From NCBI GenBank assembly GCA_964234715.1, contig OZ174285.1: a stretch of DNA of 64,000 nucleotides; one strand, written 5' to 3'. The DNA comes from Podarcis melisellensis (taxonomy: Eukaryota). A program made the position numbers and the translations under genes. Positions 5,721-60,283 of this stretch are shown here, in pieces. Position 1 is the stretch's first letter; every line of letters begins with the position of its first letter. Under the pieces are notes generated by a model that made no database searches, was not told the origin of the DNA, and was given only the letters and a program-made list of their open reading frames with translations.

Positions 5721-5794
5721 ACATCCCTGAAGAGGAAGCCAAATACTGGACTCAGAAGTTAAAGCAGATAAACTCCTTGGAGGAAGATGAGGAG
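5721..5794 (+). CDS. UNC13B: UNC13B coding exon: DIPEEEAKYWTQKLKQINSLEEDEE (helix following C2A)
   Basis: Acceptor tcttgcag| and donor |gtgggt. 74 nt, phase 1 to phase 0. Confidence 0.95.
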
Positions 5795-7210: not shown

Positions 7211-7268
7211 CATTCCTTTGCGGAAGAGGTCCAGAAGCAGCCGCTGCCCACTGCTGCCTCCCAGTGTT
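7211..7268 (+). CDS. UNC13B: UNC13B coding exon: HSFAEEVQKQPLPTAASQC
   Basis: Long pyrimidine tract with ttag| acceptor, donor |gtaagt. 58 nt, phase 0 to phase 1. PLPTAAxQC is the Munc13-2 linker motif. Confidence 0.93.
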
Positions 7269-9124
7269 GTAAGTGAGAAATGTTCAGTCGCTTCGTATTT
7301 CCGTCCTTCAGCAGGTTGTCGTGCTTTGCTTTCTTTCTGCAGTAGAACAAAGTGTGTTTGCTGAGCTGTCAGTACTTCAGAACCCTGGCAGTAAGGATCC
7401 CTGTGCCAGCCCTGTCTGTCTGGGTCTCTCTTGGTCCTTGCATTCAGACATGGTGTTCGCCTGTCCTTCGTTCTGTGGTTTGGAGAGTGCCATGTCTTTG
7501 GGTTCAAGGGGGCCTGTGGGGCCGAGGCAGAAGCCTCCCTTGCCAAGCCCTTTCTTGGCCTTGCAAGTCTGGTCAGGCTTGAAGCCTCTGCTGGCCACTG
7601 CAGGGCCCCCCTGTGTCGCATGGCAATGGGAGCCGAAGTGGGCTGCCTCCAAGAACGGCCGCTCTCTTGCTCAAAAAACGGGACCCCTTGGGCCAGGTGT
7701 CTTTCAGTGTGTGGACAAGACTGAGTTTTCTGGTGGAAATGGGAGCATAACATCCAAAATAAATAACCACCTTCTGCATGCAAAGCGGGAAGCGTTCTAG
7801 GGGCCTTGATTCTGCATCAGCAAAAGTGGCCGGGTTCATGCTTCTCTGTAGCCCAGCATGGAATAAACGATGGTTTGCCATGACTGAGAACCCATGCTCA
7901 GCCCTGCCTGCTTCACTCTGCCCCCAACTGGAGCGCAGAAGCGAGGCCGCCTGTCTTACCATTGATGTGTGAAGCAGCACTTGCGGGATATTTTCCTCCA
8001 AATCACAACTGTAAGCCAAGCTTTGCTTGCTGCTCATTTGAGATAAGCCGCCGTTTGTTTCTAGCTGTGGGTCACTGTCAGATGCTTCCATTGTCAAATC
8101 TGGAGCTCCAGGTGTCAACGACGGCTCCTTCTGTAGGCCAGGGTGCCCCTATTCCCAGCCCCTCCCCATGCCCTGGGGAGATGTGGGGCTGGGGGGATCT
8201 CAGCTGCAACTCCTGCCAAGAGCTGCAACTCCTGCCAAGTGGTGCTGATATTTGGATGCAGGGCGTAGGAAGGGGCGAGGGCAGTTTTGTTAAACGCTAG
8301 CAAAGAAAACGGAACAGATCCAGCTTTCTCTTGCTAAGTGGTGTGCCAATCTCCAAGGCTTTGCATATCTGAACTGCTCTCCTCCTTTGAAACCTGGTAA
8401 GACTTGGTATTCAGAGTATTACATGTTGCCGGTTGCTTATCCACTAGGCTGATTAGAGGCTCTCTTCAAGAAGGTTAACATTAGGAATTGTTAATTACCC
8501 TGTTGCTGGACAAGCAAATTAAATATCTAGTAGCTTAATTACTTTTCTAATATCACTGAGTGGCATTGTATAAACTCATTATTCAAGTATTTATTAAATT
8601 TTTATACCACTTAATAGGAATGAAAAATTCTAAGTTGTTTACATAGAAACTTTACAAAAGCAAGTATTTGTGTGGGGAGACCCCCCCCCCTTTAACTGAC
8701 TTGGATTGCACAGGATTTGGAGAAGGACATTGACTTAATTGCATATTAAAGCCCATGTGTGACTGAGCAGAAGAGACAAAGGGCTTGCAGTTCACTGCAT
8801 TAGTGCAACTGAGCTGCACAGCTCTAAGCCCTGCAGGGCTGGAGATCATCCTCACTAGGCCTAAGGATGGCAAGCGGGCACAGGACCAAGCTTCGCAGCT
8901 CATTACAAAGGCCCATCCAGTTGTGCGCCGGGCTCTCCGCCGCCGCCGCGAAAGGCCGGCATGATGGAACAGGGAGTCGGGGGAGATGCCTTGCCCTTCA
9001 GCTGTGGTTGACTGCAACTTCCATCATTCCTTGGCTGAGACTGATGGAGAAGCCCAGACTAAGAGGGGTGTATGTCTTTTAGTTGCTTTATATTAAAAGC
9101 CATGGTCACAAAATGTTCCCTATA

Positions 9125-25117: not shown

Positions 25118-25340
25118 CTTTTGAAGACCACGATAGTGCTGTGGATGACAGAGACAGCGACTACCGCAGCGAGACCAGCAACAGCATTCCTCCCCAGTAC
25201 CACACCACCTTGCAGCCCAATGCTTCGGTGCACCAGTTCCCCGTGGCTTCCCGCCTGCAGCAGCAGGGGGTCCCCCGAGAGTGCTGTGTGGAGTCCCTGC
25301 ACGGCTATGATTTGGATTACCACGAACGAGCAGCCATCAG
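25118..25340 (+). CDS. UNC13B: UNC13B coding exon: [30 protein letters not shown]...[11 protein letters not shown]
   Basis: Acceptor ctgtcttctag| and donor |gtaggt. 223 nt, phase 1 to phase 2. [18 protein letters not shown] is diagnostic for Munc13-1/ubMunc13-2. Confidence 0.96.
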
Positions 25341-26664
25341 GTAGGTACCCCCTTGGAACCAGGGCGTTTTCTTCCCCCAACCACAAATTTATTGGCAGGA
25401 GAAACTCACCGTAAGCTACCAAGACTGGGGCTGGCTGCTTCAGACTATCTTGTGGTCAGGTTCTTAAAAGAAAAGCCATTCTGCTGCTTCAGGGGTGACA
25501 GAAGAGCAGTGAGCAACAGCTGCCAGACACGGGTCCCCCCCCCAGAATAGCCCAATGGGAGCAAAGAGAGCTTTGCAGTTGAGCCTCCTCCTTGCGAAGC
25601 AGAGCTGGTGGTAAGCAGTTCTTTTTGCTGTGGAATTTTGGGATCCCCAGGTTGTCGCCCTGAGTGACCAAGAGTGACTGACGATATGTGGATCAATTTC
25701 ACTTGAGATTGCAAGTCGTGCTGACCCTCAGGATGCCCCTCTTGCTGAGATTTGGCTTCCGTTGCCTCGCACCCATCCAGACTCCTGGCATGATTGCGCA
25801 ACCACCAGTCCCACACGCCACACACTTGCTTTCACTTTCCATTTTACGATACTAAGCTGTTTGAACCTTCTGTGTTGCTCTTGTCCTTCACGTCTCCCAA
25901 CGTCTCCTTGCCTTTTTGAAGAAGGCGCCATAGCTTAGACTCCACTGTGAGTGGCCGAACTGACCTGGAATCTGCATCACAGTCAAGTCAAATGACAAGC
26001 CGCCAGCTGTCATTAGAGAGCCGCCACTCACTAGAGGTGTCTGATAGGTGGGTGACCCTCTCCGAAGCCTCTGTGTCCGTGTCTCGTGACGTGGCTTTGG
26101 TCTGCTGGGGTTCCTGGGCTGGCTATCAGTGTTTGCATGAATACATCCTCTTCCAGGCATAGTTGCCGGCTGGCTGTTTTCTGTTGCTTCTCTTGTTTCA
26201 ACTGGGTTTTTGTTTCTCTTGAACATTTGTACCAGCCCTCTAAAGAGAGAACTGATGCAAATCATTACCTTTCCTCCATACTAGGCCTTTAGAACCTTAG
26301 ATCTATCTAATTTATCCTCATATAATTACTTTGGTTTCTAATTGTCCTGTCAATACTGTAGCTGGAGTTTTTAGGATTCATGTTTTCAACTCTGACTTGC
26401 CCATCATATCTTGTTTGTGCTGTCCACATGGTTAATGGAAGTAACCCCAAATAATAATTGGAACAGTTCCTCATTTTGCGCCTTATCAACATGATTGTTG
26501 TTTTTAATTTATTTACCTCTAGCGATAAACCACAAGTAAGATAATGGGTTTTTCCTGTTTTGTTGTTTTGTCACATTGCAAATTTAATTAATTGATGCAC
26601 TTTATTGTGTGCTTAGTGTAATAACTTATTATTAGTCTGTTGCAAATGCCCCTTCTTAAAATCA

Positions 26665-26975: not shown

Positions 26976-27384
26976 TGAGACGCTCCAGAAAGTGACTTGT
27001 AACATTTTAGGTAGCTGCTCATTGACATTTTTAATCCGCAATTCCTGTTCTTAACAAAAGCTTATAAATAACATACCATACATCACTTGATAGTATACAT
27101 AACACTGGTATACATGTTTCGTTCTCTCCTACCCCTACAACCCTACTATTTAGCTGCTGCAGTAATAATAAAAGAGAGATTCCTAACTTTTCATGTTAAT
27201 AAATGGATTCATTGTTATGATATTTTAATATAGTTTTTGCATGTGATTCACGATATCATTTGGTCTTTATGAAATGCTCCTTTGCAAGTTTTGTGTTTAA
27301 AGCTCTTTTTTCACCCCTCCTGCTCTTTCCTTTTTTTCTTTGCCCTTCTGTCCTTCTTATATTTTCCCCCTCCACACATATCAG

Positions 27385-30300
27385 ACCAGGATCTTTAGTT
27401 AGCAATGGGAAAGTCAGGATCATTCCATTTGATTACGAAGTTGGCCAAGAACAGGAAGAGTGTGAAGAGAACTATGAGGAATTAGGCAAACAGTTAATAG
27501 AAGATTTTTTAGAAAAAAGTCACAGGACTAGAAGTTCACAGGGACGAAGGAGCCCGAGACTCTCGAAAAGGGAGAACTTTGGCCATCCTGAAAGAGGAAG
27601 ATACTCACGGAAGGCTTGCCCAGAATCGGGAAATCCCGATGTTCCTTGCTATCCAGAGGAATATGACACAATAGACAGGAGAAGAAAGAAGAAGCTGCGA
27701 TATAACAATTTTGAAGAATGCGACCGAACTATATTGCAAAGCAGTGGTAACCGGAAATTTTCATCAGGCAGCATTAAAGCAAGAACTGAACATAACCTAT
27801 ATCCTGATTATGATGAAACTGAGAAATGGGGCAGCAGCCCCATTGAAAGTGAAGAACAGTTACCGGAATATCCAGTTCTGCGTCCATACAAGAATGGCCT
27901 TCTAGTCAAGAGTGGCAAGTTGTCCGCTAACCAACGTGCAAAGCATGACTTGGGATCAGTCCATTTTGATGGTGAAAATGAGATCCATTCAGAACAGCCA
28001 GCTCACTCTTTTGTGCCATTGGGTGCCCTTAAAGAGTTTGGCAGCTGTTCGTCCAGTGTACTCCTGTACTCCCCAGTTTCGGATGATGATGATGATGAAA
28101 TGGAAGAAATAGCAATACTTTCCCAAGCATGGCGTGAATCCAGTGTTCGCCATGTTGGAGACCTTACTGACGCCCGTACTGGAAGTGCCATATCCCTGTT
28201 ACCAAGGGACAAAAACTCACATAGGATGAGAGGAGGAAAGCACGGCTTTCTTAAGCAAGACTTGACCCTCTCTCCTGTTGAAGAGCCAACGGAAGAATAC
28301 GTGGACACAATGGATGAACTGCAGTGCTTAGTTGAAACTGTGTCTGAATACTTAGCTGAAAAAGAGGAGGAGATTAGCAAATTTGAAACCCTTCCTGCGA
28401 GCAAAAACGCAAGCGATTGTGCCTCTCCCAAACTGGCCGGTGCTGATAAGTTGGCGGAGGAAAGTGCCCCTTTGGAGCAGGCAAAGCCAGCCGCTTCTGC
28501 CACAGAGGAGAGCGAGGGCAGCAAAGGCATAACAGAGGCATTGCCAGACTTGTCTGGGGTGAAGAACACGGTCAGCTCCTTGTTTAGTTCTTTCACTGAA
28601 AAGGTGGGCTCAGGAACAAAGCACTTAACAGCCTCAGTTGAAAAACTTGTATCCCCCACACCAGAGAAATCTGAAGCCCCTGGTCAACCTGAGGGAGGCA
28701 TCACAAGTCTGTTTTCAAGTAAGCCTAAGTCTGAGGGTGCCTCTCCAGAACTGAAAGCAGAAAACAAATTGGATGCCAAGCTGTCCACTGCAACTTCTCC
28801 TTCTGTGACCCAGAGCAGCCGTGAGCGAGAAGCCGGTGATGCCAAGGCCAGCATCCCAGAAAAGACAACAGGAGATGACAAGGCTCCTCCAAGTGTCCAG
28901 GATGCTTCAGCAAACGCTGCTCCGCCCCCTTCCCTGGACCCCAGCTCAGTCGTGAACTCCGTCTTAGGCATCTTCAACCCTTTGAAAATCTTCTCCGAAA
29001 AGGAAGCACTGAAAAAAGAGACTGCAAAACAGGAGGAGGCTGTGAAGGTGGAAGCCACGCATGCCAGTGCTTCTGAAGCCAAGGCAAGTGCAAAGGCAGC
29101 TGAAGGCAACGCGACAAAACCCACCAACATTGCGCCTCCCGAAACGAGCAAGAGCGAGGCAGAAGCGAGCGCAAGCAGCGGCCCCGTCTCCTCCATCTTT
29201 GGCAAGCTGTCGAGCTCCATTAGTTCTTTTAGCTTGAAAGCCAGTTTTGAGAGTTTGGCTGTTCCCAAGCAGCCAAGTGGGCCGCAGAAGGCTCCTGATG
29301 CGCCGCCGCAGGCCACAAGTCAGCCAGATAAAGTTGTTAAAGAACACCCAGACATGCCAAGAAATCCACAACCTGCAGGGAAAGTGCCAGAAAACAAGCC
29401 AAGTGAAGCCAAGAAGGAGGCTGGTACCGCTCCGCCGTTGGAGCAGGGGGAACCATCTGAGAGCTTTTTCAGTCCACTTAAGAAATCCTTCAGCCAGATG
29501 CTGCTCCCTTCTTCTGCTACCGAAACTGTGCCAAAGGAGCCACCACCGGGCTTGGGGAAAAGTCACCGTTCTGAAGATGATGTCAGGAAAACGAGCTCCG
29601 CAAGCAGCGAACCCAATTTCCCTTTCACCGGTAAACTCCAGATTCCCTTTTTGAGCGGTTTTGGCTTTTCAGACAAACCACCGCAGGACAACAAAGAGAA
29701 GCCAGGAATTTTCACTTCCTTCTTGAAAGCTGCTTCTGTGGAAAACCTGACAGCTTCAAAAGATCAAACTGCCCCACCAAGTTTTAGTGGCAAGCCACCA
29801 AAGGCTGAAGAGGGTCACAAAAGCAGCAACGCGGAAGCTGCCAAAACAGAGTCGTCAAAGTCTCAGGCAGTTCCCGAGGCACCGCAGAGAAAAGAGGAGC
29901 CGGCGAGGAAGAAAGAAACCAGTAAAGAAGATGGTCTGGGTGCACCAAAAAGTGGAGATAAAAAGCAGGGTGCCTCAGACACTTCAAGAATTGCGCACAT
30001 GGATCATGATACCAAAGGCATGGGTGCTCTGGACCACAAAGATTCCAAATGCAGGGGGGAGCTGGCAGCCCCCACAAAAGAACCTGACTTAAATACGACA
30101 GCAGGAAAGCCAGTGCTTCCTGGTGGAATCAGAGAGGACCAGGCAATGGATGATACGCCGAATAAGGCCCCACAGCCAGGGCAGGGGTTGCTCTCGGGCC
30201 TCTTCCGGCGGCCGTCTTCAGACCACATAACCCACAGCGAAGAGTCGAATGCTAAAAATGAAACGGACAGCCAGAAGAGCAGATCAGCTGGCTTACTTTC

Positions 30301-33300
30301 TGGATTATTTAGGTTTGCTTCAAGTGAAAACCTGACCGAAAGTATGCCAGATAAGGCAAAATCAGGCTCTCTGGGCATAATGAAGTTTTTTGAGAGGAGC
30401 GAAGAGCCTAGTTCTGGTGACAAGTCCGTTGGCTCACATGTGACTCCCGGTCCCCAAGAAAGCACTGGGGGGAAACCGGAGACAGGCAGCTTCATAAAGA
30501 ACTTCATGCAGAGGCCAAAAGAAAAAGTGGAGGAGGCAGTGACCGAGACTGCGAAGGCGAATGGTCATTTGCCTCACCCAGAACTGAGCAAGATGGAGAA
30601 CGGACATGGTGTCGTCCCTTGGCATCCCCCCTCTCAGAATGCTTTAAGCTCACAGCCAAAGATACAAGACTTATCGGGGCAGCGAACTCTTTATAGACAA
30701 CCTATGGATTCCAATATTTATCAAGCAGTTCTCAACGAAAGGTCAAATGAATTTCTCAATTCCTCTTTGCTGAATGCTAAATTGCGTGGCCACTCAGAGC
30801 AGCATCTTGCTCTTGAGGAAACAAGGAGCAGCCCCTCTAGCTTTGACTGGGAATATGATGCAGGAGCATTTTCTCTTAACGCCCACCAGGTTTCCTTGCC
30901 AGTTTACTACGTCTTGCAGCAGAATTCTGTCCCACTGGCTGAGTTTCTGGAATGGCCAGACTCCAGTGACGCTGCAGTGAACTTGTGTAAAAAAGATGGC
31001 AATGCCAATGTCGTGGATTGGAGGTCAAATGCAAATTTTGATGCTCTGAGCATGGATTTCAGTGTCATGTCCCACGAATCGTTTGATCAGTTAGACTTAC
31101 AAGATTTAGGTCTAGAAGAAACTGAAATGTGGACAACGCATTCTCTGAATGGAAACTTTCCTCCATTTGATGACTGCAGCTATATTTTGGAAGAGATGCC
31201 CATGGACTTAAGCTATTCGTCAGCATGTGATGGCAATATGTGGACCTTAATTGATCAGGAGTCCTTGAGCCTGGATGGCAGTTTTGTCTATTCATCTTAT
31301 AGCCAGGAGTACCAGGACTGGCTGACGCTGCTTGAGAAGGGCGTGTGGTGGCCATCGGAAGATGGCGATTGTGGATATTACATGTACAGGGACGGTCAGT
31401 TTGTTTATTCTCTGCTCACCGACCCCACTGGGCAGTATGTCTACATTTGCACTCCTGACACTTACACCTACCCAGACTACTGGGATTATAATTATCCGCA
31501 GAGCATTTTGCAGAGCTCTGTCTTGGAAGATGACATGATTGCCGTTTGCGGTTTCAAAGTGCCTCTTGGTAATGAAGACGAGTTATTCTGGTTTGCTGAA
31601 GAGGAGCAATTGGATAATTACTCTGTAAACAAACCACTTGATTTGTCTGTAGCTCTGCAGAGAAGTGATCAACTTATGAACATGAATTTAGAGACCTTTT
31701 CGCAGATGTTTGAGGAGTCCATTTATTACCAGAGAGAGCAGCCTTTAGACTTTTCAGGGTACAAACTTCAAAAACTCAAAGTAGACTTTAGGCCTGAGAA
31801 TGACATGGAGTGGCGCTCAGAAGAGCCTCCCCTGACCCTTGACCTTAGAGTTCACTCCAGGGTGGCTTCCAGCGGGAGGCTAAAAGATGATGCTCTACCC
31901 AAACATCTGGACAGGACTCCTGCTGTGACAGTTTCCGAAAGTGCACAGTCAAGACGGTTTGGTTTCCATATATTCCAGTCTTCTGCCAAGCCGGAGCCTT
32001 CATCGGCGTCTCAGAGTGTTACAGAAGTCAAAACCACTGAAGAAGATAAAAAGCCACCTCTGAATAAAGTTGCATCTTTATTCTCTGCTTTGGGTGGCCT
32101 GATGGGTAAGGGTTTGGAAGCACATGAGACAGTGGAAGACGCGGCTGTGAAGAAAGGAGAACCGGTGGTGTTGGGACACAAAAACGATGCTCTTCCAGCT
32201 ACGCCACCCAGGAAAACAGGAGAGGATATCCAGCAGCATACTGAGCATGAACAAGAGAGAAATGAGAGAGGCAGATTAGTTAAGTCTGTTAGGGATGAAA
32301 AGCCAGTGATTTCTCAGAAAAAGCCTCAGCTAGTGAGGTCTTCCTCTCAGCTCAGCCAGGGTCCCGTGGACAGCAAGACCAGTCAGCTGGATCAAAGTGT
32401 TAAGCCTGCTCCCCTCCCAAGTCAACAGAAACCCAAAGTGGGTGTGGATGAACCCAAGAAAACCCAGCCAGCCCCCAGCCAAGCGCCCACAGAGGCTGAG
32501 GGCACGTTGTTTAAAAGTGCTCTCAAGATTCTCAGCCTGGGAGAAGACTCCTCCACAACTGCAGCACCCAATAAAAGTCAAGGCCCCGGGTTCTTTGATT
32601 TCTTTAAAACGCAGGTCAACAAAGCCCCACAGCCACCACCAGCACCCCAACCAAATCTGCCGAAAAATGAAGCCGAGAAGAAAATGCCTCAGGAGAAAGT
32701 GGAGCCCCCAGGCATTTCATCATTCTTTGGTTCCATAGGGGATCTTTTCAAAGTCGATGCCGCCCCTGCCCCACCAAGTGCCGCTGCTCCACCAAAGAGT
32801 GGAACCCACACCTCCCTGAAACCGAATGACAACGCAGACCAGCGTAGCAGAGAGCCAAGTAAGAGCAGCGCTCCTGCTCCTCAAATCCCCGTGGAGCAGG
32901 CTCGTGGGGAAGCTGCCCAGAAGCCCGCAGTCCCTAAGGAAGAACAGCATGGGAAAGTAAGCAAGGAAACTGCTCCAGCGAAGAAGGAGGACATCCCCAC
33001 TGCAGGGAATGCAGAACCCAAGCCTCCCGTGCAGGCAGGCCCTCGAATGGACCAAGCAAATCGCTCTCCAGGGCAGCATGGCCACGGACCAGCTGTTGCA
33101 CCGGGACCGCAAGGCCATGCAGGAGCCATACCTGGTAAAACTCAGCCAGGAAAAGCCAGTCAGCCACCCAGGGAGTCTGGGTTTAGCCTGCCTTTTGGCT
33201 TGTCGCAGGCAGCACCTTCTAAGCCTCCGCAGGCACCACAGCCGGCTGGCAAGAGCATCTTCTCCTCCTTCTTTGGTGCCCCAGAGAAAGCCCCTGCCCC

Positions 33301-36229
33301 AGCTCCAGCAGCTCCTAATGCCAAGCCCCCGGAAGCAGAGGGTCTGTTCAAGATGCCTTCTTTCTTTTCTGGAGGGCCCACCGCAAAGAAGAACATGCCT
33401 CAGAGCAGCTCCAGCTTCAGCTTTTTCAACCTGACCTCCTTCCTGGATGACAAACCACCAGCAGCTGCTCCTGACAAGGGGAATATTGCAAAGCCACCTC
33501 AGCAGCAAGCAAGCAACCTGGGAAGGCCGCCTCAACAGCAAGCAGACGCAAAGCCATCTATGAAGCAGTGTGTTTCTGTTGACTCTGGCATTGGACTTGC
33601 CAGACAGCAGGGCTTGAAGGATAAAGAGGCAGCGGAGGGTGTTATAGAAGCAGTACTTGGAAAGCAAGAGGCTGTTGGCCCGGAGCACAAGGCAAGTGAG
33701 TTAAAAACTCCTGCGGCTGAGCATGCTGCGGCAAGTGCTTCAGAAGTAAAAAATGAGGTAGAGATACCTTTTGTGGCCAGTAAACCTCCTGATGATGGTA
33801 CAGATAGAGAAGACCACTCAGTCTATCCTGATCCTGGCTCTCAGGTCCCTACGCTGCAGGAAGACATTGCACCTTCCCTTCCGGAGATTCCACAACCAGA
33901 GGAGCAGCTGCAAGACAATGCAGAAAAGAGTGGTGGTATTGTGGTGTCCTCTGAGAAGGAATTTGTTCCTTTAGTTGGGAACGAGACTTTTGAAAAGGCA
34001 GAGCCCGGTCCAGTTTGTGATGAGACCTCTGTGGCTCTTGAGCCATCTCTTGCTCCTGGAGACCTTTCACAGGAGGTTGTACCTGAAGAAAAACCAAGCG
34101 CCCCTGAAGTCAAGCCCCCGGAGCCCAAGCAACCTGATAGGACCCCAAATACTGCAGGAGAGCAGCAGGCTCAGGGCCAGAGGCCTCTCCCTCAAATGGC
34201 AGCAGCAACACCTAACCTGCAGGAGAAACCTAAAGAACCTGAGGCTGACAAATCAGTTCTAGATTCCTCAGTTGAAATGTTTTCCAGCTTCATGACGAAG
34301 ATGAAACCAACCAAAACATTATCTGGCTTCTTTTCCCAGCCTCAGACTCCAGCAGCTCCTAGTGCCCAAAAGAAGAGCACTTCGTTTTTCGGCCTTTCCT
34401 CCCTGCCCACTGGGCCTCCTCCAGCATTCACAAGTGATCTCTTTGGCATTTTTAAAGGAGCAGCAGATGAGACCCTTTCAAAGCCTGCAGGGAAGACCGC
34501 AGGCACTTCAAAAGCCCAGGAAATGAGCTCCAGGGCAAAGGAGGCTGTGGGCCCAGTTCTTGGTAAAGGTCTCGCAAAACAAGATAAAGCCTCTAGGGAT
34601 CAACTTTTAGGGACAAATGCCGGCAGCGTTTTGAAACAACCCGACCAAACCTCTAGGGCTGAACCTACAGAGAAAGAAGCTAGCAGTGACTTGAAACAAG
34701 ATGCCTCTTCTGCTTTAGCAGGTGAGAGTTTGGGGAAAGAATGTAGGGCAGAATTGGAAGCTGAAAGCAGTGGAAGACCTGAACATGGTCTGGAACCCTC
34801 CCTGAATGCTTCAGAAACTTTAGACTCAAGTAGGGATCAGGGCCCTGAAGTGGTACAGCTGGACACAAACTTACTGGCATCTGATGAAGCAGGGAAGGCT
34901 GCCCCGTATAGTCAAGAGGTACATGATGCAGCTGAGACGGTGGTGCTGCAGGAGAAGAGTGAAGTGCCTGTGGAGCCCTTAGAAAATGATGCTGTCCCTG
35001 CTGTTGAAGAAGAGCAAGTGAGCCCAGCAGGAGAAACAGACGTTGGCCAAATGGATTTGGACAGTACACATGAGCTGGAACCCAAGGTTGGTGAGGAAGA
35101 GGAACACCTGAAACTGCCAGAACTGACGGATACTTCACTAACCACTGAAGAAGTAACTATAAAGAATGAGGCAGATATTGATATTTGCCCACCAGACACG
35201 TTTGAGACCCTGGAGATGGAACCCAAAGCTGCTGCAGATGAGGCCCATGACTTGCCCCATCAGGATATAGAAAAGGTCCCTGAAATAAAATCTGATCTTC
35301 CTCCTGAGCAGAAGGAGCCTCTAACCATCAGCGAAGCAGCCCCAGAAGCTGCTCCCTTGAAAAGCAGTTTGGCTGGTAAGAGCAAGCCAGCCAGTGCTCC
35401 TGCAGAGGCCAGCAGCACCAAGCCCATGTTTGAAATTCCAAGCATGCCCACTTTGCCCAAATTCGGCTTCATGTCTTCTGCAGACAGCAGCAAGCCATTT
35501 GGCTCCTTCTTCTCTGCACAGCCGCCTTCGGCAAGCAAGCCTGCGCCTGAGCCAGGCCTCGTCTCCAGCTTCAACAAGTTTTCCTCAAGTCTGTTTGGTG
35601 GAGGAAGTGATGAGAAAGCAGGTAAAGTAGAGGGCACTCCGGGTGCTGTCTTTGGAAAGAAGCTGGACTTCTCATTTCCGTGGCAGAAAGATGCCAAGGA
35701 GGCAAGTCTCAAGAAGGAACCAGATGTGCCAACACCAAAAGCTCCCTCCAAACAGGAGGCGGCCCCAATTGCTTCATCCAAACTAGATTTGAAGGCACCA
35801 GAAGTTCTCTCGAAAGCCGAGGAACAAGCAGTGGATGTGGCCGGGGCTGACGGGAGCCCAAACCTCTCTGCCTCTGACCAGCCAGCCGACAGTGCTGCTG
35901 ACTCAGACCTTTCTTCTAAGCAGCCTGACAGCAAGAGCAACGAATGCTTCGATGGTCCCACACCTGACATTCCGCTTGCGCCCAGCAAGGAGCTGGAGCT
36001 TGAGGTCCCCAGAGAAACGGAAGATGAGCCAAGCACCATTTCCAGTGAGCCTCCTGGGCTCCCTTTGGAGGAACCAGCAGAAGGCGCCACACAGGTTCTG
36101 GATGAAGTAGAGCAGAAGGAAAGTGTCCCTTGTCCAGAAACGGAAACACTTGCCACTGGACTGCAGCCGGCGGAGCAGAGTAGCCCTGAGCCACTCAGGA
36201 AGAAAAGGCCAGTAGCCAAAACAGCATGA
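27385..36229 (+). CDS. UNC13B: UNC13B giant exon (~2,940 codons, mostly disordered). It ends either at a GC donor after 36207 (internal cassette) or at TGA 36227-36229 (terminal).
   Basis: Uninterrupted ORF 27260..36229. A long pyrimidine tract and tcag| acceptor at 27384 give phase 2, matching the upstream donor (AG|A = Arg). An 8.8 kb stop-free frame is not expected by chance. Confidence 0.92.
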
Positions 36230-36937: not shown

Positions 36938-38212
36938 TAAAGCCTCCTCCCTCCCACCAGGAGGAGTTAAACATGGCTGTTGACTATTAAAGGTACCAAT
37001 GCAGAAACATCTAGTTCTTGCTGCTCGGAAGCCGTTACTGCCCAGCTAACATGATTCAGTTTTTCTCTACTTTTACCAGCTGTATTCAGCGGCATTAGCT
37101 GAATGTGCTTTTCTGTGTTAGGCTGCAGGTCTCCAAGCAAGCTGATAACTGGTTTTCTGGTTTACCATATCTCAAAAACATGTTTTTTTAATTCCATATT
37201 GAAGAGAATTGCAGTGATTTCATGTTACAGCTATCAGTATATTAGTGACTTTTGCTCCCTGTTTACCCCTGTCCAGGGGATGATTGGGGCCGGTGTTCTT
37301 GCTGCCCCTCCCTAGTTACAGAACTGCTCGTCACTAAAATCATTGCTAAATCTGCACTCCTCACCCGCCACCTCTAGACAATTGGCCCAGCAGGGATCCT
37401 GCTTCAAGCATTTCCCTTTCTGCCCAGCCTGTTTTCCAAGGAATAGATGGGATTTTCGCAGTGTAGCTGCCTTGGGTCCTCTTGCAGCTGTCTCTGCCTA
37501 TGTGGGCTGCCAAAAGCCAGGCGGCACTTAAATAGCGGCCCAAAAGCATTTGTGCCCCTTCCCTCTTAGAATTCCACAATGGAGAGAGTGTGTGTGGGTG
37601 TCTTGTTGAATTAACTCCAACCTTATAATAATCAGTCACTCCCAAGCAGCAACAGCAATGGGCCCTTGTTGTGCTGGAAGAGAGGGCTGATTTTTCTAAA
37701 CGGCAGCTACAACAGGATCCATTCTCAGCCACTGGAGAAACTTAAGAATGTGTTAATGAAATGGGAGTGAAGATGAAACCCTCATGTCCTAGAATCCACG
37801 CGCAGTTGACATGCTAGGGGCAAACATTGTTGTAAGAAGGTGTTGAGCTTAGCAGCTTAGAAGTTCAATGTGCATGAAACTTTTGCTGCCATTCTTAATT
37901 TTCCTATGGCCTGTAAACAATTTACAGGATGCGCAGCAGATGATGCTATCTGTTTCTGATTGATATATCAATAGGGTCCAGAGGCTTAGGCCCAGCACAA
38001 AAATTGCAAACACAAATTTGGAAGTGGCGGGCGACTGAGAACAGTGGCTGCAATGTGCAAGAGACATTTGCTTGGCTAGAGTTTCCATTTGATGCTTTGG
38101 CCAGGTGTAGTTAGGATTTGCGCTCTCTCTCTCTCTCTGTGTGTGTGCATGCATTGTGCTGTTTCCTGGTTGCCAAGACCTTTTGACTTACTAATGCTTT
38201 GCTCTCTCACAG

Positions 38213-38509
38213 TCCTGCCAGCAGTAGTAAGTTTGGTTCCTCCTGTAACATCAGTCAGGGAAGCTCTCAGCTGAGTGAGCTGGACCAATATCACGGGAGT
38301 GTGCCCTGCTCCGAACACGAGGACGAGCTCACAGAAGGAGTGCCTGCTGCTGCTGCTCCTCACCCAACAGAGGGCCCTGCACCATCTAGTGAGCAGCACG
38401 AGCCCCAGGAAGTGCACAGGGAAGGAGAGGGGAAGGTGAAAGAACATGCCACACCTCAACTACCTCCTGAAGTGGACGAGCCCAAAGAAGCCACAAAGAC
38501 ACCGGGCAG
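38213..38509 (+). CDS. UNC13B: UNC13B coding exon: (S)[27 protein letters not shown]...KTPG
   Basis: Branch point tactaat, acceptor ctctctcacag|, donor |gtaggt. 297 nt, phase 2-2. [20 protein letters not shown] matches ubMunc13-2. Confidence 0.93.
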
Positions 38510-38965
38510 GTAGGTGGTGCACGTTGGCCATGGATTCCTTGGAGTTGAACTTGAGGCCACTTTTCTGGTAGATCTTGGGAGAGACAAACAGGATATGGGT
38601 GTAGTGCCATAGCTGGTTTTGAGTGCCCACTGCTGTCTAGGGTCAGAAAGGGGGGGGGGACAAACTTCATTAAATAAATCTTCATTAATCCTCTTCATCA
38701 TCATCATCATCATTTTACACCCATCCAGTGACTAATGGGGCGCATTCCTTACAGGGTTCTCTACCACAGTCCCTGTTGGCCACACTTTCTGTTCTTTCCA
38801 TGCCATTCTCTGTCTTTTGCTGGCCATCCCAGTTCTCTTGGGGCCAACTGTTCTCAGCGTTTGTTCCCACCATTACAATAAAAGGTTCTTTTCATGTGTT
38901 GAGTTTCATGAGACTGCTCTTGAGTTTCCAGCACTCATTTTCCCCTTGTTTTTCCTTTTTGCAAG

Positions 38966-39056
38966 TCACCTTGATGAAAATGAACTTCTCCTTCTTCCCG
39001 CTGCAAGAGCCCGCTGGATCCGAGCCATTACTAAAGTGCGGCTTCAGTTTGAAGAG
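38966..39056 (+). CDS. UNC13B: UNC13B exon with the ubMunc13-2 calmodulin-binding helix: (S)HLDENELLLLPAARARWIRAITKVRLQFEE
   Basis: Pyrimidine tract with gcaag| acceptor, donor |gtaggg. 91 nt, phase 2 to phase 0. ARAxWIRAxTKVRLQ is the Munc13-1/ubMunc13-2 CaM site. Confidence 0.94.
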
Positions 39057-42000
39057 GTAGGGCCCGCGAAATGTCTCTTCCCCCATCCTTCCACCCGTGT
39101 CTGCGCTTGTAAACCTTGCCGTGACTTTTGTCTGAAGGTTGCTTTGCTTGTCTAAGGGAGACACCATTCTGGGGCAACTGCACAAACGGTGCATGTGCCT
39201 CTCTGGTACCAACAACTTGCTGAAGTTGACTGTGGTGGGCTTAATTTGTTGACCCCATGGCAGAGGGGTGCAGAACTTGTGCCCCACCAGATTTTGTTGG
39301 ACTCTCTCCTCAGCCCCAACAGCCAACAGGGCTGGGATTGGGGCGAAGTTGGAGCTCAGCGACATCTTGGGGCACCAAGTTGGCTACCTGTGTTGTGTAG
39401 GAAAACCAGGATTATTTATGGAAGTGTTGCGTTGACACCACTGTTCCGTTGTGCCTGTAGTTTGTCTTCTGAGGCCCTTCTCTATGTTCCCTCTCCCCAA
39501 AAGGTTTGGAGGGTGACAACACAAGAAAGGGCCTTTTTAGTCGTGGGTCCCCCTCTGTGGAATGCTCTCCCCAGATACTTTCCCAACCCGTTGTGGGTGT
39601 GTGGGAGAGGAGACCCTTCCATGAACTACTGTGCTGCTCCTGGCTGCCTCCCGATTTCACCCCAGAGAGCACCCAGAAGCCGAGTGTTGTCTGAACAGGC
39701 CGGAGCAGAGAGTGGCAGCAGGTTCCCTCTCTGCGCCATGTTGGATGCTGCCCTGGCCAGCGGAAGGCCATTGATGTACCCCGGATCAAAATAGGCTCAT
39801 GTTTGCAACCTTGTCGTTATAGATGGATCAGAATTCACACAATGTCACTGGGCTCTTCCGAGGGTGGGCTTAGCACTGCAACTGTGTTGTTGAGGTATCA
39901 CAAAAGGGTCCTTAGCAGCAATGATATTTTTCATGGAAAGGGGAAATCTGAGCTAAATGTGGGGGAAATACAGGGTGGCAGTTTTAGGGGATTCTGCAAA
40001 ATAAGAGCATGCAAAAGGAGCAGCTATCTGACACTGATGTCAGGCTTTCTTAGCAGTTTCTCACGCAGGGCAGAAACTGTGTTTTGCTACACAGAGTATC
40101 AAAACACTTTTGTAATTCTTAAGCAGGTCAGCAGCCTGTTGAGTTGAATTAAAAGATCCTGACGGGTGTAAGAAATGTGAGATATTTTCAAAAAGCCGTC
40201 AACCCAAGAGCTTTAACAGAACAACCTGGCGAGTTTGTCTGTCTTCTGAAAAATGCTGCTTTGAATCATTTAGTGAATTGTTTTGAAAAGTAAAACTCTC
40301 AAGAGCGCTGAAGGCTTCTGCACACAAAGAGAATTGGTGGTGTGTGAACGACAAGCGGCTCCTGATGGCTGCAAGCAGACCCCTCCTGCCTTCACGTCCC
40401 CCCCTCCGTCTGCTTTCTTGTGGGGCAGAGAAACTGGCAGGATGCGCCGTGGAAAGCTTTTGCCACTGCAAGATGCTGCACTGGCGTTTCTCCAGAAGCA
40501 CCAAGGTTTTCTCTTGATGCATCTCCTGGGAGTGGGAGATAGGAGTACAAACTTGTCTGCTGTGAGCAGGAAGGTTCCTTGCGCGCCTGTCAAGATTGGT
40601 ACATTAACTCTTTTTCGTTATTCTGGCTTGTGCTTGTGTCGTGTTTCACTGTTCACGGAAGAGAGTTGTATTCAGTAGCATCAACAATAAGTTGGGTATC
40701 CCCCTTTGCATCTTCTATAACCTTTTTTGGAAACTCTTATAGTTGCAATACTCATCCTCAGTTGCACCCATTTCAGAGCTGTTCAGGATAGCAAACTATC
40801 GTCCCAACTGGAATTTGGTTCCAGTGGAAATAGCATTTTTCAATAATGGACCTGGTGGAGTAGGCTCCATTCCTGAAATCATTTGACCCAAACTGGAGCC
40901 TGGCAATTCAGTCATGCCCTCACACACGTGTGCAACCCACATGGTCCGAGTCATCAGGCAAATCAAAGGTTTGGAAGGTGGGTGCCCTCTTTCGCTTTGG
41001 GCGGAGTCTGACTCCCCTGTGTGGGACACTCTTTAAATGCAAAGGTGCACACTGGTTAAAGGGTGAATTTTCCACATTTTGGGGTTCTCCTCTGTTGCAA
41101 ATGAACCTTAACCAGTCCTGGATCAAATCGGGACTTGAAAGCTGTGAACGTTTGGCTGAAATCTTAATCCTTTCACACCAGATACGCTTGGAGTTCAGGC
41201 AAGCAAGCCAGACTGAATTTTGCTCTGCTGCGTTTGTCAGCAGCTGGTACCGCAGCTGTTGTGTGTGGAAAGCAAAACGGAGAAGGAGAGCCTTGTGTGT
41301 CTTGTAGATTTAAGTACTATGAAGCGAAAGACTGGTCAGAGACACCTGTCTGTCTTGGAGTTGCAGGTTCCTGTGCGGGGCTACTGGTGTGGAAACATTA
41401 CATCTGGGGTGCAAAATAATAAATATGTTTCACATAGCGTAGAAAAGACTATACATATGTAGTATTATTCTAAAAGTGTCATGTGGCATATACTTTTGAC
41501 TTCCCTTTAAAAAAGCTGTTTACATTTCCATAAGAGATTATAGTCCTTTTTGTGTGTGTGTGTGTGGGGGGGGGGGTATTTACACGCATTAACTCCTGGC
41601 GTAGTAGCTTGAATATTGGCAAAGTCTGCATGTTGTCCTTAATAAAGTTTTTGACACTTATATCCAGGTTGATGAATATTCATAGGGCTTTCTGGGTAAA
41701 TTGAAAGTGAATCCATCTGGAATGAGAGTCAGGAGAGAATTATATGTCAATAGCCAGGCTTATTAAATTGATACAAATGAATGTGTCTTACCTTCTTGTT
41801 GTTGGCAAAGGAGGACCATTTTGGAAATCCTTGTAATGTTACGTGGAGGTAGCAATGGGTATTCTCTGAGGAACTGATGGGGATCTTCTGATCTGGATTG
41901 CAGTGAGGGGCCAGGTCACATTTTACTAGAAGTTGCAGAAGGGGAGCTGCAAGTGCCCCCTTGGATTTGCAGAGGGCTCCTTCCCTAGAAACCCTCCCGT

Positions 42001-50490: not shown

Positions 50491-50690
50491 NNNNNNNNNN
50501 NNNNNNNNNNNNNNNNNNNNNNNNNNNNNNNNNNNNNNNNNNNNNNNNNNNNNNNNNNNNNNNNNNNNNNNNNNNNNNNNNNNNNNNNNNNNNNNNNNNN
50601 NNNNNNNNNNNNNNNNNNNNNNNNNNNNNNNNNNNNNNNNNNNNNNNNNNNNNNNNNNNNNNNNNNNNNNNNNNNNNNNNNNNNNNNNNN
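50491..50690. other. Assembly gap (200 N)
   Basis: Run of N. Confidence 1.
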
Positions 50691-54100: not shown

Positions 54101-56700
54101 GCCCATGCTCTCCAGGCTTATGAGCCGGGCATGAGAGAGGAGCCCGGAGGCCTTGTTGCTGATCCCTGGCCTCAGGTTCTCCAGAGCGAGACGGCTGCCA
54201 AAGACAGATGGAAAACCTACATTAGCCCATCTTCCATGGCTAATAGCTTTGCCCGTGTCTATCAGTCAGATTCGTGTCCGCCTTGAAAAAAGCTTCCCCA
54301 GCCATTTCCCCACATGGTGCCTTGCGGTGGTGAATTTTGTGTGTGAGCTCTGTGTTGTGATTTCAGTCAGTTTACTTGAGTGATCCTTAGCATTAGGAGA
54401 CAAGGAGTGTCTTGCTGTTTAACTCTTGTTGATCGATGTTTCCAACTTGATTGGCTTTCCCAGGAGCTACAATTAGCTATTTCAACATCTTAATGGCTGC
54501 ATTATTGCAAGGCAACAGTATCTTTGACTGGATCAGCTTATCTTCAAATGAGTTTTTCTGGGCCCTTAATACCAAAGGAGCATCCTTTATCACCTGAAAG
54601 CTGGTTAGCAGGCTTGCAAGGCTAGCTAGGCAGATACACATTTTCACATTGTGCAGCCTTCTTGAATGCTATTTTGAGAGTCTACTGGAGGAAGATCTCA
54701 GCAGAAGAGAGACTCTTTCCTTCTCCCACCCTAGATGTGCTGCTGCTATCCATCAGCCCCCCACAGGTGGGGTTGGAGTTTGGAGTGCTTTTATAAAAAC
54801 TCCCCTTCTCTGCCCCTTGTTGCTGTGGTGGTTGCTCAGGGTATCTGATCAGCTGTATGCTGCAGCCACAAGATCCAGTTTGATTGCTGCTGAGATGAGT
54901 TTAGGACCAGAAGAAATCCTAAGGTCAAATCCTGACACTGCCCTCCATGTTCCCTCCCTGCCCACTGTTGGACTGGCAGAGAGCTGAAAGCTATAAATCC
55001 CCTCCTCCACCTGCCATTTCCTAAACTTTGTTGCTTTGGCCACGATTCTCCTTCTCCAAGCTTTTGTCTTCTCCAGGAACACAAATATCCTTGGGGTGTC
55101 ATAGAATTCCAGACTCAAAAAAGGTATTTTTTTAAAAAAGAGTAATTGGTTTGTTGTGATTCCATGATGCCCAGAAGTTTATGCCCCCAGATAGGACCCC
55201 CCCCCATTTTCTCAATTTTTATTTTTTTATTATTGACTGCTTTCCGTAGGTCCCCTGCTGTAATACCATGCTGCCAAGAGGTGGGGGTTTTTCATAGCTC
55301 CTCAAGACCCGCCCATCCATGTGCCCTTTTGAAAGATGCCCATGGTGTGCTCTGCTCCCCCCTTTGATATGCTACCCCCCGAGGGCCAATGTGGTTCTCA
55401 GCCTGCACACAATTTAGCCACCCTGATACAGAGCATGTGATGGCACCCAAAGGGGCTGCACCTTGTTTTCCCTTGTGCTCCCTGCTAGGTCTCTGCCACC
55501 TCCTTGGCAGCAATTTGGGGTTTTGCTTGCTGACTCCCTTGTGGCTCATTACAAATGATGTGGCTGCTGGACGGTGCCCTCTGCCTGTCAGGCCAGCTTT
55601 GAATAGCAGGGGCTTGTAGGCGGGGGCTCTTGTGGGGTGCCCCACAGCTAAGGAGCTGCCTTTCTCTGCTGACTGCAAAGCTTAAACATGAAAAAATAAA
55701 GTATTTCCTTTCTGGGACTGATCTTAGTGCTTTTAACAACTTAGAATGTTTTTATTGCATGTTTTCATAAACTGCTTATCCAGCCTGAGCTTCTGGGGAT
55801 AAGCTTTTTTTTGCACCCGTTCCCATTATGGTCCTTAACGGTTTCCGTGGAAGTTGCAAGCCCAGCAAACTTCAAACAAGGTTTCTAGCGATAAATGCCT
55901 CTCTTCCTGCCCCCCACTCCCAAAGCAGTGCATCTCCTCTAGGGAGATTGTTCCTGTACTTGGGCTGAGGTGTGAAACTTCATCTAGGAGGCAGCCATCT
56001 CTTTCCAATGCCTGTGTCTCCAGGCCTGCCCCCTCTGCTCCAATGTGCTTAGTCACTTAGAGATAGTTAGTCTTCTTTGACACTGGAAATGAATGGCTGC
56101 TTACTCTGTGGGCTGAAACGGTGTCACTGTCATTGATGTGTCCTCAGAAGAAACGAGATTTTGCAGGGCAATGCCGCTCGCCCTCAAGAGAAGAACACAC
56201 AGCTGAGTAGCAGGCCGATCCTGCAGACACCTTCTAAACAGTCCGGCGGCTTTTTCTCTTAGACAAAATTGAAGCTTTTTCCATCAGAAAAAAAGTTGTC
56301 TTCTTAATTATTAAGATTTCCGCCCCAGCCTTCCAGTCCGTAGTCAGAAAAGTAAGCAGAAAAGCAGACAGCTTTCAGTAGAACTGGGAAAGAGACGGTG
56401 CTTCACACATTACGCTGCTCTGGGATTCTGAATACCGTGCATGGAAAAGTGGGTTTTGTTTCGCTGCTCCAGCAGTTTCTGAATGGAGCTGAGTGTCGGC
56501 GACCCCCTGTGCTGAGCCAGGCTGGGGGGCTTGCTGGAACAGAGAGACCCCTCTTTGAGGAGGGTCCTTGAGCATCTGAAGCTGAGGAATGCAAATCCAC
56601 ATAGGAAATACCGCCTGCAAGGGTTTCTACCTTGGGCAGGGTGAAAAGTAGTGTAGGAGCCGGAATAATGTCGAAGGGGTGCATTTAAATGCTTGTGTAA

Positions 56701-58045
56701 GGGACCATTTGGATCCTTTCCAGTCGGGATTCAGGCCTCATCATGGGACTGAAACTGCCTTGGTCGCACTGGTTGATGATCTCCGGCGGGCTAGGGACAA
56801 AGGTGAGAGCTGTTTCCTAGTTCTGCTGGATCTCTCAGCGGCGTTTGATACCATCGACCATAACATCCTTCTGGACAGTCTTGAGGGGCTGGGAGCTGGG
56901 GGCACTGTCCTACAGTGGTTCCGCTCCTTCCTCCTGGGCCGTGTTCAGAAAGTGGTGGGGGGGGATGAGTGTTCAGACCCCTGGGCTCTCACTTGTGGGG
57001 TGCCTCAGGGTTCTGTCCTCTCCCCCATGCTTTTCAACATTTACATGCAGCCACTGGGAGAGATCATCAGGAGGTTTGGGCTGGGTGTTCATCAGTATGC
57101 AGATGATAACCAGCTCTACCTCTCTTTTAAATCAGAACCAGTGAGGGCAGTGAAGGTCCTGTGTGAGTGTCTGGAGGCGGTTGGAGGATGGATGGCGGCT
57201 AACAGATTGAGGCTGAATCCTGACAAGACAGAAGTACTGTTTCTGGGGGACAGGAGGCGGGCAGGTGTGGAGGATTCCCTGGTCCTGAATGGGGTAACTG
57301 TGCCCCTGAAGGACCAGGTGCGCAGCCTGGGAGTCATTTTGGACTCACAGCTGTCCATGGAGGCACAGGTCAAATCTGTGTCCAGGGCAGCTGTTTACCA
57401 GCTCCATCTGGTACGTAGGCTGAGACCCTATCTGCCTGCGGACTGTCTCGCCAGAGTGGTGCATGCTCTGGTTATCTCCCGCTTGGACTACTGCAATGCA
57501 CTCTACGTGGGGCTACCTTTGAAGGTGACTCGGAAACTACAACTAATCCAGAATGCGGCAGCTAGACTGGTGACTGGGAGCGGCCGCCGAGACCATATGA
57601 CACCGGTCTTGAAAGACCTACATTGGCTCCCAGTATGTTTCCGAGCACAATTCAAAGTGTTGGTGCTGACCTTTCAAGCCCTAAACGGCCTCGGTCCAGT
57701 ATACCTGAAGGAGCGTCTCCACCCCCATCATTCTGCCCGGACGCTGAGGTCCAGCGCCGAGGGCCTTCTGGCGGTTCCCTCATTGTGAGAAGCAAAGCTA
57801 CAGGGAACCAGGCAGAGGGCTTTCTCAGTAGTGGCGCCCACCCTGTGGAACGCCCTTCCAGCAGATGTCAAAGCAATAAACAACTACCTGACATTTAGAA
57901 GACATCTTAAGGCAGCCCTGTTCAGGGAAGTTTTTAACGTGTGATTTTACTGTATTTTTGGTTTTTATGGAAGCCGCCCAGAGTGGCTGGGGAGGCCCAG
58001 CCAGATGGGCGGGGTATAAATAATAAATTATTATTATTATTATTA
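56701..58045 (+). mobile_element. 5'-truncated L2-clade LINE (RT domain plus 3' UTR), relatively young
   Basis: RT motifs QSGFRPHHGTETAL, LLDLSAAFDTIDH, GVPQGSVLSP, YADD. One premature TGA at 57786-57788, after which the frame continues to RAFSVVAPTLWNALP...LKAALFREVFNV* (57944). (TAT)n tail and 8-bp duplication ttgtgtaa at 56693-56700 and 58046-58053. Confidence 0.93.
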
Positions 58046-58821: not shown

Positions 58822-60283
58822 TGGACTTCCTGGCTCTGCTCCGAGTGCCTGTTCCTCTCCTCCTCCTCCTCCTCCTCCTCCTCCTCCTCCAGGACCCTTC
58901 ATCACCCACTATTTTACCCCTATTTATTTTTAAGGAACAACTGCAAATGTTAACTCTCGCCAGGTTTATGGTAAATCTTTCTTACCGATGCAAGATAATA
59001 GTTACAGAAACTGGCTGAGTTTCTTGCTCACTAGGCCAGTCACAGTTGGTGTAGAATTATGTAATTGTCCAAGGTTTCAATTCTGTGAAACCTTGAATAT
59101 TTCTCAGTTGCGAGGAGGTGGCCCAATAAAAATGTCTTCTGTATTATATGCGTATCTCATGCCACTCGTGCCCACTGGAGGAACAGCAAGGAAAGAGGCA
59201 CCCATCTTCTTCCAAACCGCTTAAGTTTTTTTGCGCAATGAAGAGGCATGCAAATTTTGTTAAAGTCATAAAAAGAAGTGCATTCCTGCCGCCAAGGAGA
59301 TTGCAATCTAACCTTCAGCATGGGGGGGAGGGGGAGAATGTTCTGTTCACTTGCCTGTATCTTCATTAAGGGATGAGGACTAAGTGGTTGTGCTGAGCCT
59401 TCCCTTAACTGATTTTAGGATATTAGCAGATGACCTTAAAGCTATAAAAAGAAAGCTTCTGTGTGCAGGCAAGGCCTTATCTGTCTGTTCTTTCATCATT
59501 TTTCTTGTGAAAATGATAGCTGCACACAGACAAATCTGTGCCCATACAAAGACGTACCTTGAAGCTGGAACTGGCTTGTGCCTGCGCCTCTTAGGGAGCA
59601 GGGCAGAGCTGCTGGCTGCATGCCAAGGAGCACTTTGGGCAGGTAATGGATAGGCCAGGATATGGTACCTGAGGGGATAAATAGAGAGGGCTCTGCTGCT
59701 AAGACTTCAGTTTTCATAAAATTCCGGTCTCCGTGGTGGAAAAGGAAACCATTCTCATAAAGCAAATTTGGGGGGAGGTGAAGGGATCCTTTACTTGTTG
59801 CAAGAGTCAGGGAGACCTTCCTGCTCACCACTTGGCCCCAGGACCTTCATTCAGTTGGAAGGCTGAAATGGAACAGCAGGTTATACCGGCATGCTTGCAA
59901 AAATAGATTTGTCCTGCTGCACGGGTGCAATTTTGTTGGATTACGTGGCCCAAGTTAGTGTGTGTGTGTGTGTATGTGTGCGTTGCTTTTTTTCCCACTG
60001 ACTCCGATACACAGCGTCTCTGTCCCTTCTCTAGACAGCAGCTTCTGATGAGTCTTAATCCTTGGCCGAGAGAGCCTTGCTGGGCGGGCAGCAAGGGGCA
60101 CAGGCCTCTGCCACTTTGTGGCATGATGAGAGGGCGCCAACACGGCCACTGAGGATGTGTGCGAGCAGAGGCACCCTAAGGCTAGAAGATGACATTGCTT
60201 CTGTGCTTAGAACGTCTGCTGTGAAACTCCTAACTGGGCAGCCCTCTCAGAAGCAGAAGGCCCTGCTGTTTCTGGAGGAGAAG

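Follow-up and report, generated by a model that had tools for sequence, protein, structure and literature searches.

How is a Munc13 protein brought to the synaptic ribbon? The question is raised by a 64,000-nucleotide stretch of DNA from the lizard Podarcis melisellensis (contig OZ174285.1; hereafter, the window), in which UNC13B, the gene for Munc13-2, carries a giant exon with a cluster of PxDLS-type motifs. At the ribbon synapses of photoreceptors and bipolar cells, the Munc13 in use is the isoform ubMunc13-2 (PMC7660176), and ubMunc13-2-type epitopes have been found at the ribbon base (PMC7660176, PMC11536687). The recruitment of such a protein to photoreceptor ribbons is nevertheless unexplained because the RIM2 variant found there lacks the Munc13-binding domain (PMC11536687). 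PxDLS/T peptides bind to a cleft of CtBP that RIBEYE has kept and that remains accessible in ribbons (PMC10760060), and an initial annotation of the window, made from its sequence, proposed that giant Munc13-2 is anchored in this way. The background that it gave (the PxDLS/CtBP cleft, the multiple motifs of Piccolino, and ubMunc13-2 at retinal ribbons) agrees with the literature (PMC10760060, 10.64898/2026.04.28.721253, PMC7660176, PMC11536687). As we describe below, the motifs belong to a conserved module that is a candidate PxDLS ligand of CtBP/RIBEYE, a hypothesis that appears to be well founded and, apparently, undescribed.

A conserved motif array in a giant exon of UNC13B

The motifs lie in an open frame that runs on the plus strand from 27260 to 36229, comprising 2989 uninterrupted codons (the codon of frame residue n starts at nucleotide 27260 + 3(n-1)). 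A protein search with frame residues 1150-1560 matched 144 proteins, with E values from 2.5e-259 to 1e-44 and a range from lizards to shark and teleosts. The top match was the Zootoca vivipara "protein unc-13 homolog B isoform X1" (94% identity, E 2.5e-259), and others came from other squamates, turtles, birds, marsupials, placental mammals, amphibians, sturgeon, gar, bowfin, teleosts, and catshark. These gene models are predictions of annotation pipelines, and the long ones (4100-4900 residues) contain the Pfam domains C2 (PF00168), C1 (PF00130), and MUN (PF06292). Searches of the window by tblastn with the Zootoca, Anolis, and Aquila UNC13B models placed C2A-coding exons upstream of the frame at 150-251, 2861-2986, 5720-5794, 7211-7285, and 25120-25341. 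The exons for residues 18-262 of the Zootoca model span 150-25341, and the N-terminus of this model matches Pfam C2 (E 2e-11). Two further exons were located 3′ of the giant exon by the same approach (38211-38492 and 38964-39059), and the C1 and MUN exons are outside the window. These matches identify the window as the locus of UNC13B (Munc13-2) from a lacertid-like lizard and place the module in a giant internal alternative exon 3′ of a ubMunc13-2-type N-terminus. Thus, the gene and the giant internal exon had been correctly called in the initial annotation, as the orthologues are named unc-13 homolog B and C2A exons are found upstream.

Splice sites and tblastn together delimit the giant exon at 27385-36211 (+), which corresponds to 8.8 kb and around 2940 codons. 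The acceptor (...atcag/A) is at 27383-4, with the exon starting at 27385, while the donor at 36212 (CCA/gtagcc), which would end the exon at 36211, is weak. If this donor is not used, the frame stops five codons further on, at the TGA at 36227-36229. The Zootoca X1 model, which has 3208 residues and comprises C2A and the giant region without C1 or MUN, terminates exactly at this read-through stop (36227), and this coincidence suggests the existence of a truncated isoform analogous to Piccolino, the ribbon-specific short isoform of Piccolo (PCLO).

A pattern scan of the translated frame recovered all seven motifs listed in the initial annotation, each in its place and all on the plus strand. 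Two of them, PMDLS at 31199-31213 (motif #1) and PLDLS at 31634-31648 (motif #2), are canonical in that they match the ELM pattern for CtBP ligands (LIG_CtBP_PxDLS_1, P-[LVIPME]-[DENS]-[LM]-[VASTRG]). The remaining five are variants. PLDFS at 31742-31756 is near-canonical and fails the pattern, with Phe replacing Leu at position 4. AVNLC at 30974-30988 (x-hydrophobic-N-L-C in tetrapods, x-x-N-L-S in fishes) and TLDLR at 31835-31849 (x-L/F-D-L-R/T/S) are degenerate copies that also fail it and have no Pro at position 1. SMDFS at 31049-31063 is a lineage-restricted variant (S-x-D-L/F-S, in sauropsids only), and KVDFR at 31778-31792 is a weakly conserved one. The five conserved copies begin at frame residues 1239, 1314, 1459, 1495, and 1526, with spacers of around 70 residues (20 + 45 where SMDFS is present), 140 (including a domain described below), 31, and 26. 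A second CtBP motif of the RRT type was not found anywhere in the 2989-codon frame.

Residue shuffles give an idea of what could be expected by chance. P.DLS occurs three times in the whole frame, versus 0.15 expected (P = 0.0006), and twice within the 306 residues of the motif cluster, versus 0.02 expected (P = 1e-4). The ELM-type pattern also occurs twice within the cluster, versus 0.08 expected (P = 0.002). A looser pattern that collects the five variants was devised after seeing them, and its P value carries no weight. The third P.DLS of the frame, PGDLS at nucleotide 34055, is unconserved and acts as an internal control.

Conservation is more informative in this respect. The module extends over 30962-31864 (+; frame residues ~1235-1535). 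Within the giant exon, no conserved block is longer than frame residues 1241-1540, which have an identity of 0.42-0.68 to ten distant orthologues over 300 residues. We aligned the lizard segment with 31 named non-human orthologues from jawed vertebrates (alignment A1, 32 sequences). Motif #1 fits the CtBP pattern in 30 of these 32 species, mostly as PMDLS (14) or PIDLS (14) but also as PVDLS and PLDLS. Its D and L are invariant, and its conservation is 0.88, versus 0.48 and 0.55 in the flanks. In one teleost group, the motif reads PVDLT, PMDLT, or PIDLT, with an unchanged offset of -42 relative to the aromatic island discussed in the next section, and PVDLT is the same motif that has been given for Piccolo (PMC10760060). 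Motif #2 is even more constant (conservation of 0.98, versus 0.43 and 0.62 in the flanks), matching the pattern in 30 of 32 species, of which 29 have PLDLS and one has PEDLS; two frogs have PLDLA once an alignment gap is removed. An exhaustive search provided 40 further teleost-type sequences, which are unc13bb or unc-13 homolog B by their cluster names. Motif #2 matches the pattern in 38 of them, in forms that include PLDLS, PVDLS, PMDLT, PIDLT, PINLT, PMNLT, PEDLS, and PEDLT, and it always starts 85-97 residues past the start of the island pattern.

The other copies are conserved to different degrees. PLDFS is found in 26 of the 32 species, and the rest have PVDFS, PMDFS, PLNFS, PVNFS, PLDYS, or LLDFS; its flanks are conserved too (0.71 and 0.69). 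In the further teleost sequences, 21 of 40 have PVDFS/T, which, where present, lies exactly 36 residues after the start of motif #2. At the TLDLR site, D and L are invariant across the 32 species, as is the case in three of the motifs, and the conservation is 0.79, versus 0.39 and 0.32 in the flanks. At the AVNLC site, the N is identical in ten of ten distant orthologues and the L in eight of ten, with ALNLS, VLNLS, or VRNLS in fishes. SMDFS has a conservation of 0.45, which is not above its flanks; placental mammals have SVIWC-type sequences in its place, and frogs lack it. At the KVDFR site, placental mammals have KGDFx, marsupials KVALE, and fishes RMDLK. We also considered KVDFR as an RVxF site for PP1 and rejected this possibility, given that KVDFR is not conserved. 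Loss of the motifs among orthologues was what the initial annotation had named as speaking against its proposal. Motif #1, PLDLS, PLDFS, and xLDLR are kept from shark to mammals, while SMDFS and KVDFR, which it had counted as members of the array, are not conserved beyond sauropsids and are thus probably not part of it.

The changes tolerated at the canonical motifs are what we regard as the most telling single result. Position 2 is hydrophobic or, in a non-conservative exchange, Glu, position 3 is D or N, position 4 is L or M, and position 5 is S, T, or R, such that across 72 sequences the substitutions remain inside the CtBP-ligand pattern. Furthermore, only 124 of the 2945 five-residue windows of the exon (around 4%) share 80% identity or more with ten distant orthologues, and both P-type ELM matches are among those 124, versus 0.054 expected (P ~0.0014). 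With such a pattern of conservation, the conserved motifs very probably function as linear motifs.

An orphan mini-domain within the array

Between motifs #1 and #2 lies a Trp/Tyr-rich island (31295-31459, +), which the initial annotation had described as a small folded beta domain of no known family. We modeled it twice with AlphaFold2, using a 246-residue segment with alignment A1 in one run and the domain core with a 70-sequence alignment (A2) in the other. The first run gave a moderately confident helix-plus-sheet arrangement for the island, and the second gave predicted local distance difference test (pLDDT) values of 84-92 for model residues 11-60. The predicted secondary structure consists of a helix (4-21) and four antiparallel strands (25-28, 35-41, 44-50, and 57-60), and the W, G, L, T, D, and Y of the island are invariant across the 70 sequences. 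A further conserved strand, IAVCGFKVPL (31541-31570, +), in which C, F, K, and L hardly vary among the same sequences, is predicted to join the sheet (CGFKVPL, model residues 94-98, pLDDT ~73 with A2). Thus, the earlier description agrees with the predicted fold, to which a helix should be added, and the whole, with the island at its core, is predicted to be an orphan alpha/beta mini-domain of around 95 residues. If so, it would be a new vertebrate-specific folded domain.

The motifs, in contrast to the island, are in segments with a pLDDT below 50 in the 246-residue model (model residues 4-45, 98-174, and 200-246, for motifs #1 and #2 and xLDLR), and values are low around PLDFS too; low pLDDT is only a proxy for disorder or accessibility. 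A conserved helix (31676-31726, +) is predicted between PLDLS and PLDFS in the same model (model residues 174-190), with a pLDDT of ~50-56 and a column identity of 0.73-0.75.

We looked for relatives of the island by several means. Pfam had no match on the whole frame, and the best hit for the core had an E value of 0.11, to unrelated families. Comparison of the 70-sequence profile with PDB sequences reached E 0.4 at best, Foldseek against the PDB found nothing at E <= 0.001, and VIA-align against 48,161 chains gave a best Z of 3.6, to single beta-propeller-blade-like sheets. In the ESM Atlas, the shape search stayed at template modeling (TM) scores of 0.43 or less, and the feature search returned choline-binding repeats at 0.87, under the lead threshold of 0.9. 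An exhaustive sequence search for the island found 67 proteins, all UNC13B-like or fragments except for two weak matches, a bacterial repeat protein (P0169) and a 114-residue fragment (P0170).

The island pattern W-P-x-x-D-G-x-x-G-Y...T-D-x-x-G (31320-31450) weakly resembles the repeat of P0169, which is fibre-like (WPxxDGxxGY...TDG, E 3.7e-4 via four repeats). We rejected homology with this protein, taking the similarity as a convergent hairpin motif. Membership in the choline- or cell-wall-binding aromatic hairpin repeats (PF01473 and relatives) was likewise set aside, since Pfam gave nothing below E 0.11 and the feature-search neighbors stood at 0.87. The resemblance to both is probably a matter of convergent aromatic hairpins, and an aromatic-cage ligand site in the island is conceivable.

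Docking on CtBP and other readings

On balance, we lean towards the module being a multivalent docking site for the CtBP family, that is, CtBP1 and the B-domain of CtBP2/RIBEYE. In such a module, frame residues ~1235-1535 would place the ~95-residue mini-domain between disordered linkers that present two canonical PxDLS/T sites and three degenerate ones (the near-canonical PLDFS, NLC/S, and xLDLR). Each motif would be taken up by the PxDLS cleft of CtBP1, CtBP2, or the RIBEYE B-domain, where it would lie as an extended strand. A single giant Munc13-2 molecule could contact several subunits at a time, in a CtBP tetramer or in a RIBEYE assembly or lattice, which would provide avidity. A comparable arrangement exists in Piccolino, in which disordered stretches of ~25 and ~45 residues separate multiple motifs that together cross-link filaments of the RIBEYE B-domain, an effect that a single motif does not have (10.64898/2026.04.28.721253, 2026 preprint). 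The result would be that the C2A-bearing, ubMunc13-2-type N-terminus is tied to CtBP-containing presynaptic structures and, in the spliced isoform, that the C1-C2B-MUN priming machinery is tied to them as well.

Several points weigh against CtBP docking. Short motifs are prone to false positives, and only two of the five conserved motifs fit the curated pattern; NLC/S and xLDLR lack Pro, PLDFS has Phe where Leu or Met is expected, and one teleost group has no pattern match at the site of motif #1. In addition, PLDLS, the helix, and PLDFS form a cassette whose register of 36 residues hardly varies and whose linker is conserved, which suits a composite module that folds on some partner, not necessarily CtBP. 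It has also been reported that the loss of Munc13-2 has only a mild effect on photoreceptor transmission and that inner hair cell ribbons work without Munc13s (PMC7660176).

How well other explanations account for the same observations differs considerably. The motifs could have arisen by chance in sequence that is non-functional or non-coding, as five-residue patterns recur randomly and the PGDLS of the same exon is unconserved, but the 2989-codon open frame, the orthologues from shark to mammals, the invariant motif residues, and the expectation of 0.054 conserved matches make this highly improbable, and as far as sequence evidence reaches, it is already refuted. The main competing proposal is that the x-D-L/F-S elements belong to a larger unit of interaction or folding, made up of the island and the PLDLS-helix-PLDFS cassette, which binds another presynaptic partner or packs onto the island, so that the resemblance to PxDLS is coincidental. 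The fixed register and conserved helix of the cassette would find an explanation here, as would the conserved flanks of PLDFS and its invariant Phe where CtBP ligands have Leu, and the orphan domain must serve some function. Nevertheless, AlphaFold2 packs no motif onto the island and leaves the motifs at low pLDDT, the flanks of motifs #1 and #2 are poorly conserved, as in free linear motifs, and the Glu at position 2 together with the D/N and S/T swaps tracks the CtBP pattern and not what generic hydrophobic packing would give. We thus consider such a unit improbable.

Docking on CtBP would be compatible with more than one site of action. The module might bind the CtBP family away from the ribbon, holding CtBP1 (or CtBP2) at the active zones of conventional synapses or inside secretory cells other than neurons, either as a scaffold or as a means of controlling how much of the corepressor reaches the nucleus. 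The evidence from the motifs applies here just as it does to docking in general, the exon comes after the "ubiquitous" ubMunc13-2-type N-terminus, and the module is kept in all of the jawed vertebrates sampled, with no sensory specialization seen. Bassoon and Piccolo are known to bind CtBP1, and if this were the partner at ordinary synapses, Munc13-2 would join them as a synaptic anchor of a nuclear corepressor. On the other hand, ubMunc13-2 has been described as the ribbon-specific Munc13 of the retina (PMC7660176), and we regard a role away from the ribbon as a somewhat unlikely alternative.

That the synaptic ribbon is the relevant site of action is a tentative proposal to which we also give a rather low probability. 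In its fullest form, which we consider speculative, the giant UNC13B isoform would be a second multivalent PxDLS ribbon scaffold beside Piccolino, docking on RIBEYE B-domains and recruiting Munc13-2 to the ribbon base independently of RIM. The read-through product that ends at 36227, without C1 and MUN, would then be a Piccolino-like structural isoform, and the orphan domain would provide a further binding activity. If true, RIM-independent docking on RIBEYE would explain the presence of a ubMunc13-2-type protein at photoreceptor ribbons. An isoform of ~4500 residues may also be what antibodies to the shared N-terminus have picked up. A PxDLS array of such deep conservation, located in a giant Munc13-2 isoform not described before, would be a concrete candidate for the physical link between the priming machinery and RIBEYE/CtBP.

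Neighboring features and known systems

Other features of the locus accompany the giant exon. A short exon at 25920-26063 (+) is present in the Aquila UNC13B model (residues 261-308, 69% identity) and not in the Zootoca model, and it is probably an alternative cassette directly 5′ of the giant exon. An 866-codon frame at 60062-62662 (+), with a coiled-coil-like stretch and no Pfam match, is probably the alternative N-terminal exon of the bMunc13-2 type, judging from its position. Within introns, there is a 369-codon frame at 56679-57785 (+) that encodes a reverse transcriptase fragment of a retroelement of the long interspersed nuclear element type (Pfam RVT_1, E 3e-31), and a run of 200 Ns at 50491-50690 marks an assembly gap or a masked stretch.

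The giant exon itself is rich in Pro, Ala, Ser, and Lys and contains around 17 hydrophobic mini-motifs of the S-(L/F)-F-S or GLF type, for example, at nucleotides 28577, 28706, 30302, 32075, 32720, 33254, 34382, and 35504. These may be a repeated element for binding membranes, vesicles, or a partner. Additional conservation peaks are found at frame residues 341-390 and 441-490. In fishes, the exon may be larger still. A fish-type Logan contig (L001:1987-15792, SRR9214508) has an uninterrupted 4601-residue frame with the same island and motifs and no Pfam domain. We rejected its interpretation as a spliced mRNA, given that so long a frame contains no Pfam domain, which points to a longer giant exon (~13.8 kb) in some teleosts. 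Models of 5000-6000 residues are found in Nerophis, Astyanax, and Megalobrama.

With respect to known systems, the classical CtBP ligands with PxDLS motifs include adenovirus E1A, ZEB1, RIP140, Ikaros, and BKLF. The UNC13B array shares with them the core pattern and its tolerated variants (PLDLS, PIDLS, PMDLS, PVDLT, PEDLS, and PxNLS/T), placed in disordered regions. In contrast to these ligands, which are mostly nuclear transcription regulators, UNC13B is a cytoplasmic presynaptic vesicle-priming protein, and it has no motif of the RRT type. Related by origin is ubMunc13-2, the isoform with the C2A N-terminus, which comes from the same gene, uses the same upstream C2A exons, and is the Munc13 of retinal ribbon synapses, but the isoform that has been described lacks the 8.8 kb exon. 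In the papers covered, including that of Kawabe et al., ubMunc13-2 and bMunc13-2 are the only isoforms given for this gene. Our literature search found no paper linking any Munc13 to PxDLS or CtBP or describing the giant exon in vertebrates or the motifs that it carries; most subscription journals were outside its coverage, so novelty is not proven.

A close counterpart in architecture is Piccolino. Like the giant UNC13B isoform, it is a giant and largely disordered presynaptic scaffold with several conserved PxDLS/T-like motifs, spacers of tens of residues, and degenerate copies beside a canonical one. UNC13B could also give rise to a truncated product if the 3′ splice is unused, with the stop at 36227 coinciding with the C-terminus of the Zootoca X1 model. 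Nevertheless, the two are unrelated in gene and sequence, and the UNC13B array has only two canonical copies and is split by the folded orphan domain. RIBEYE binding has been demonstrated for Piccolino, whereas the UNC13B motifs are candidate RIBEYE ligands. Finally, and unlike Piccolino, the spliced UNC13B protein also has the C1-C2B-MUN priming machinery.

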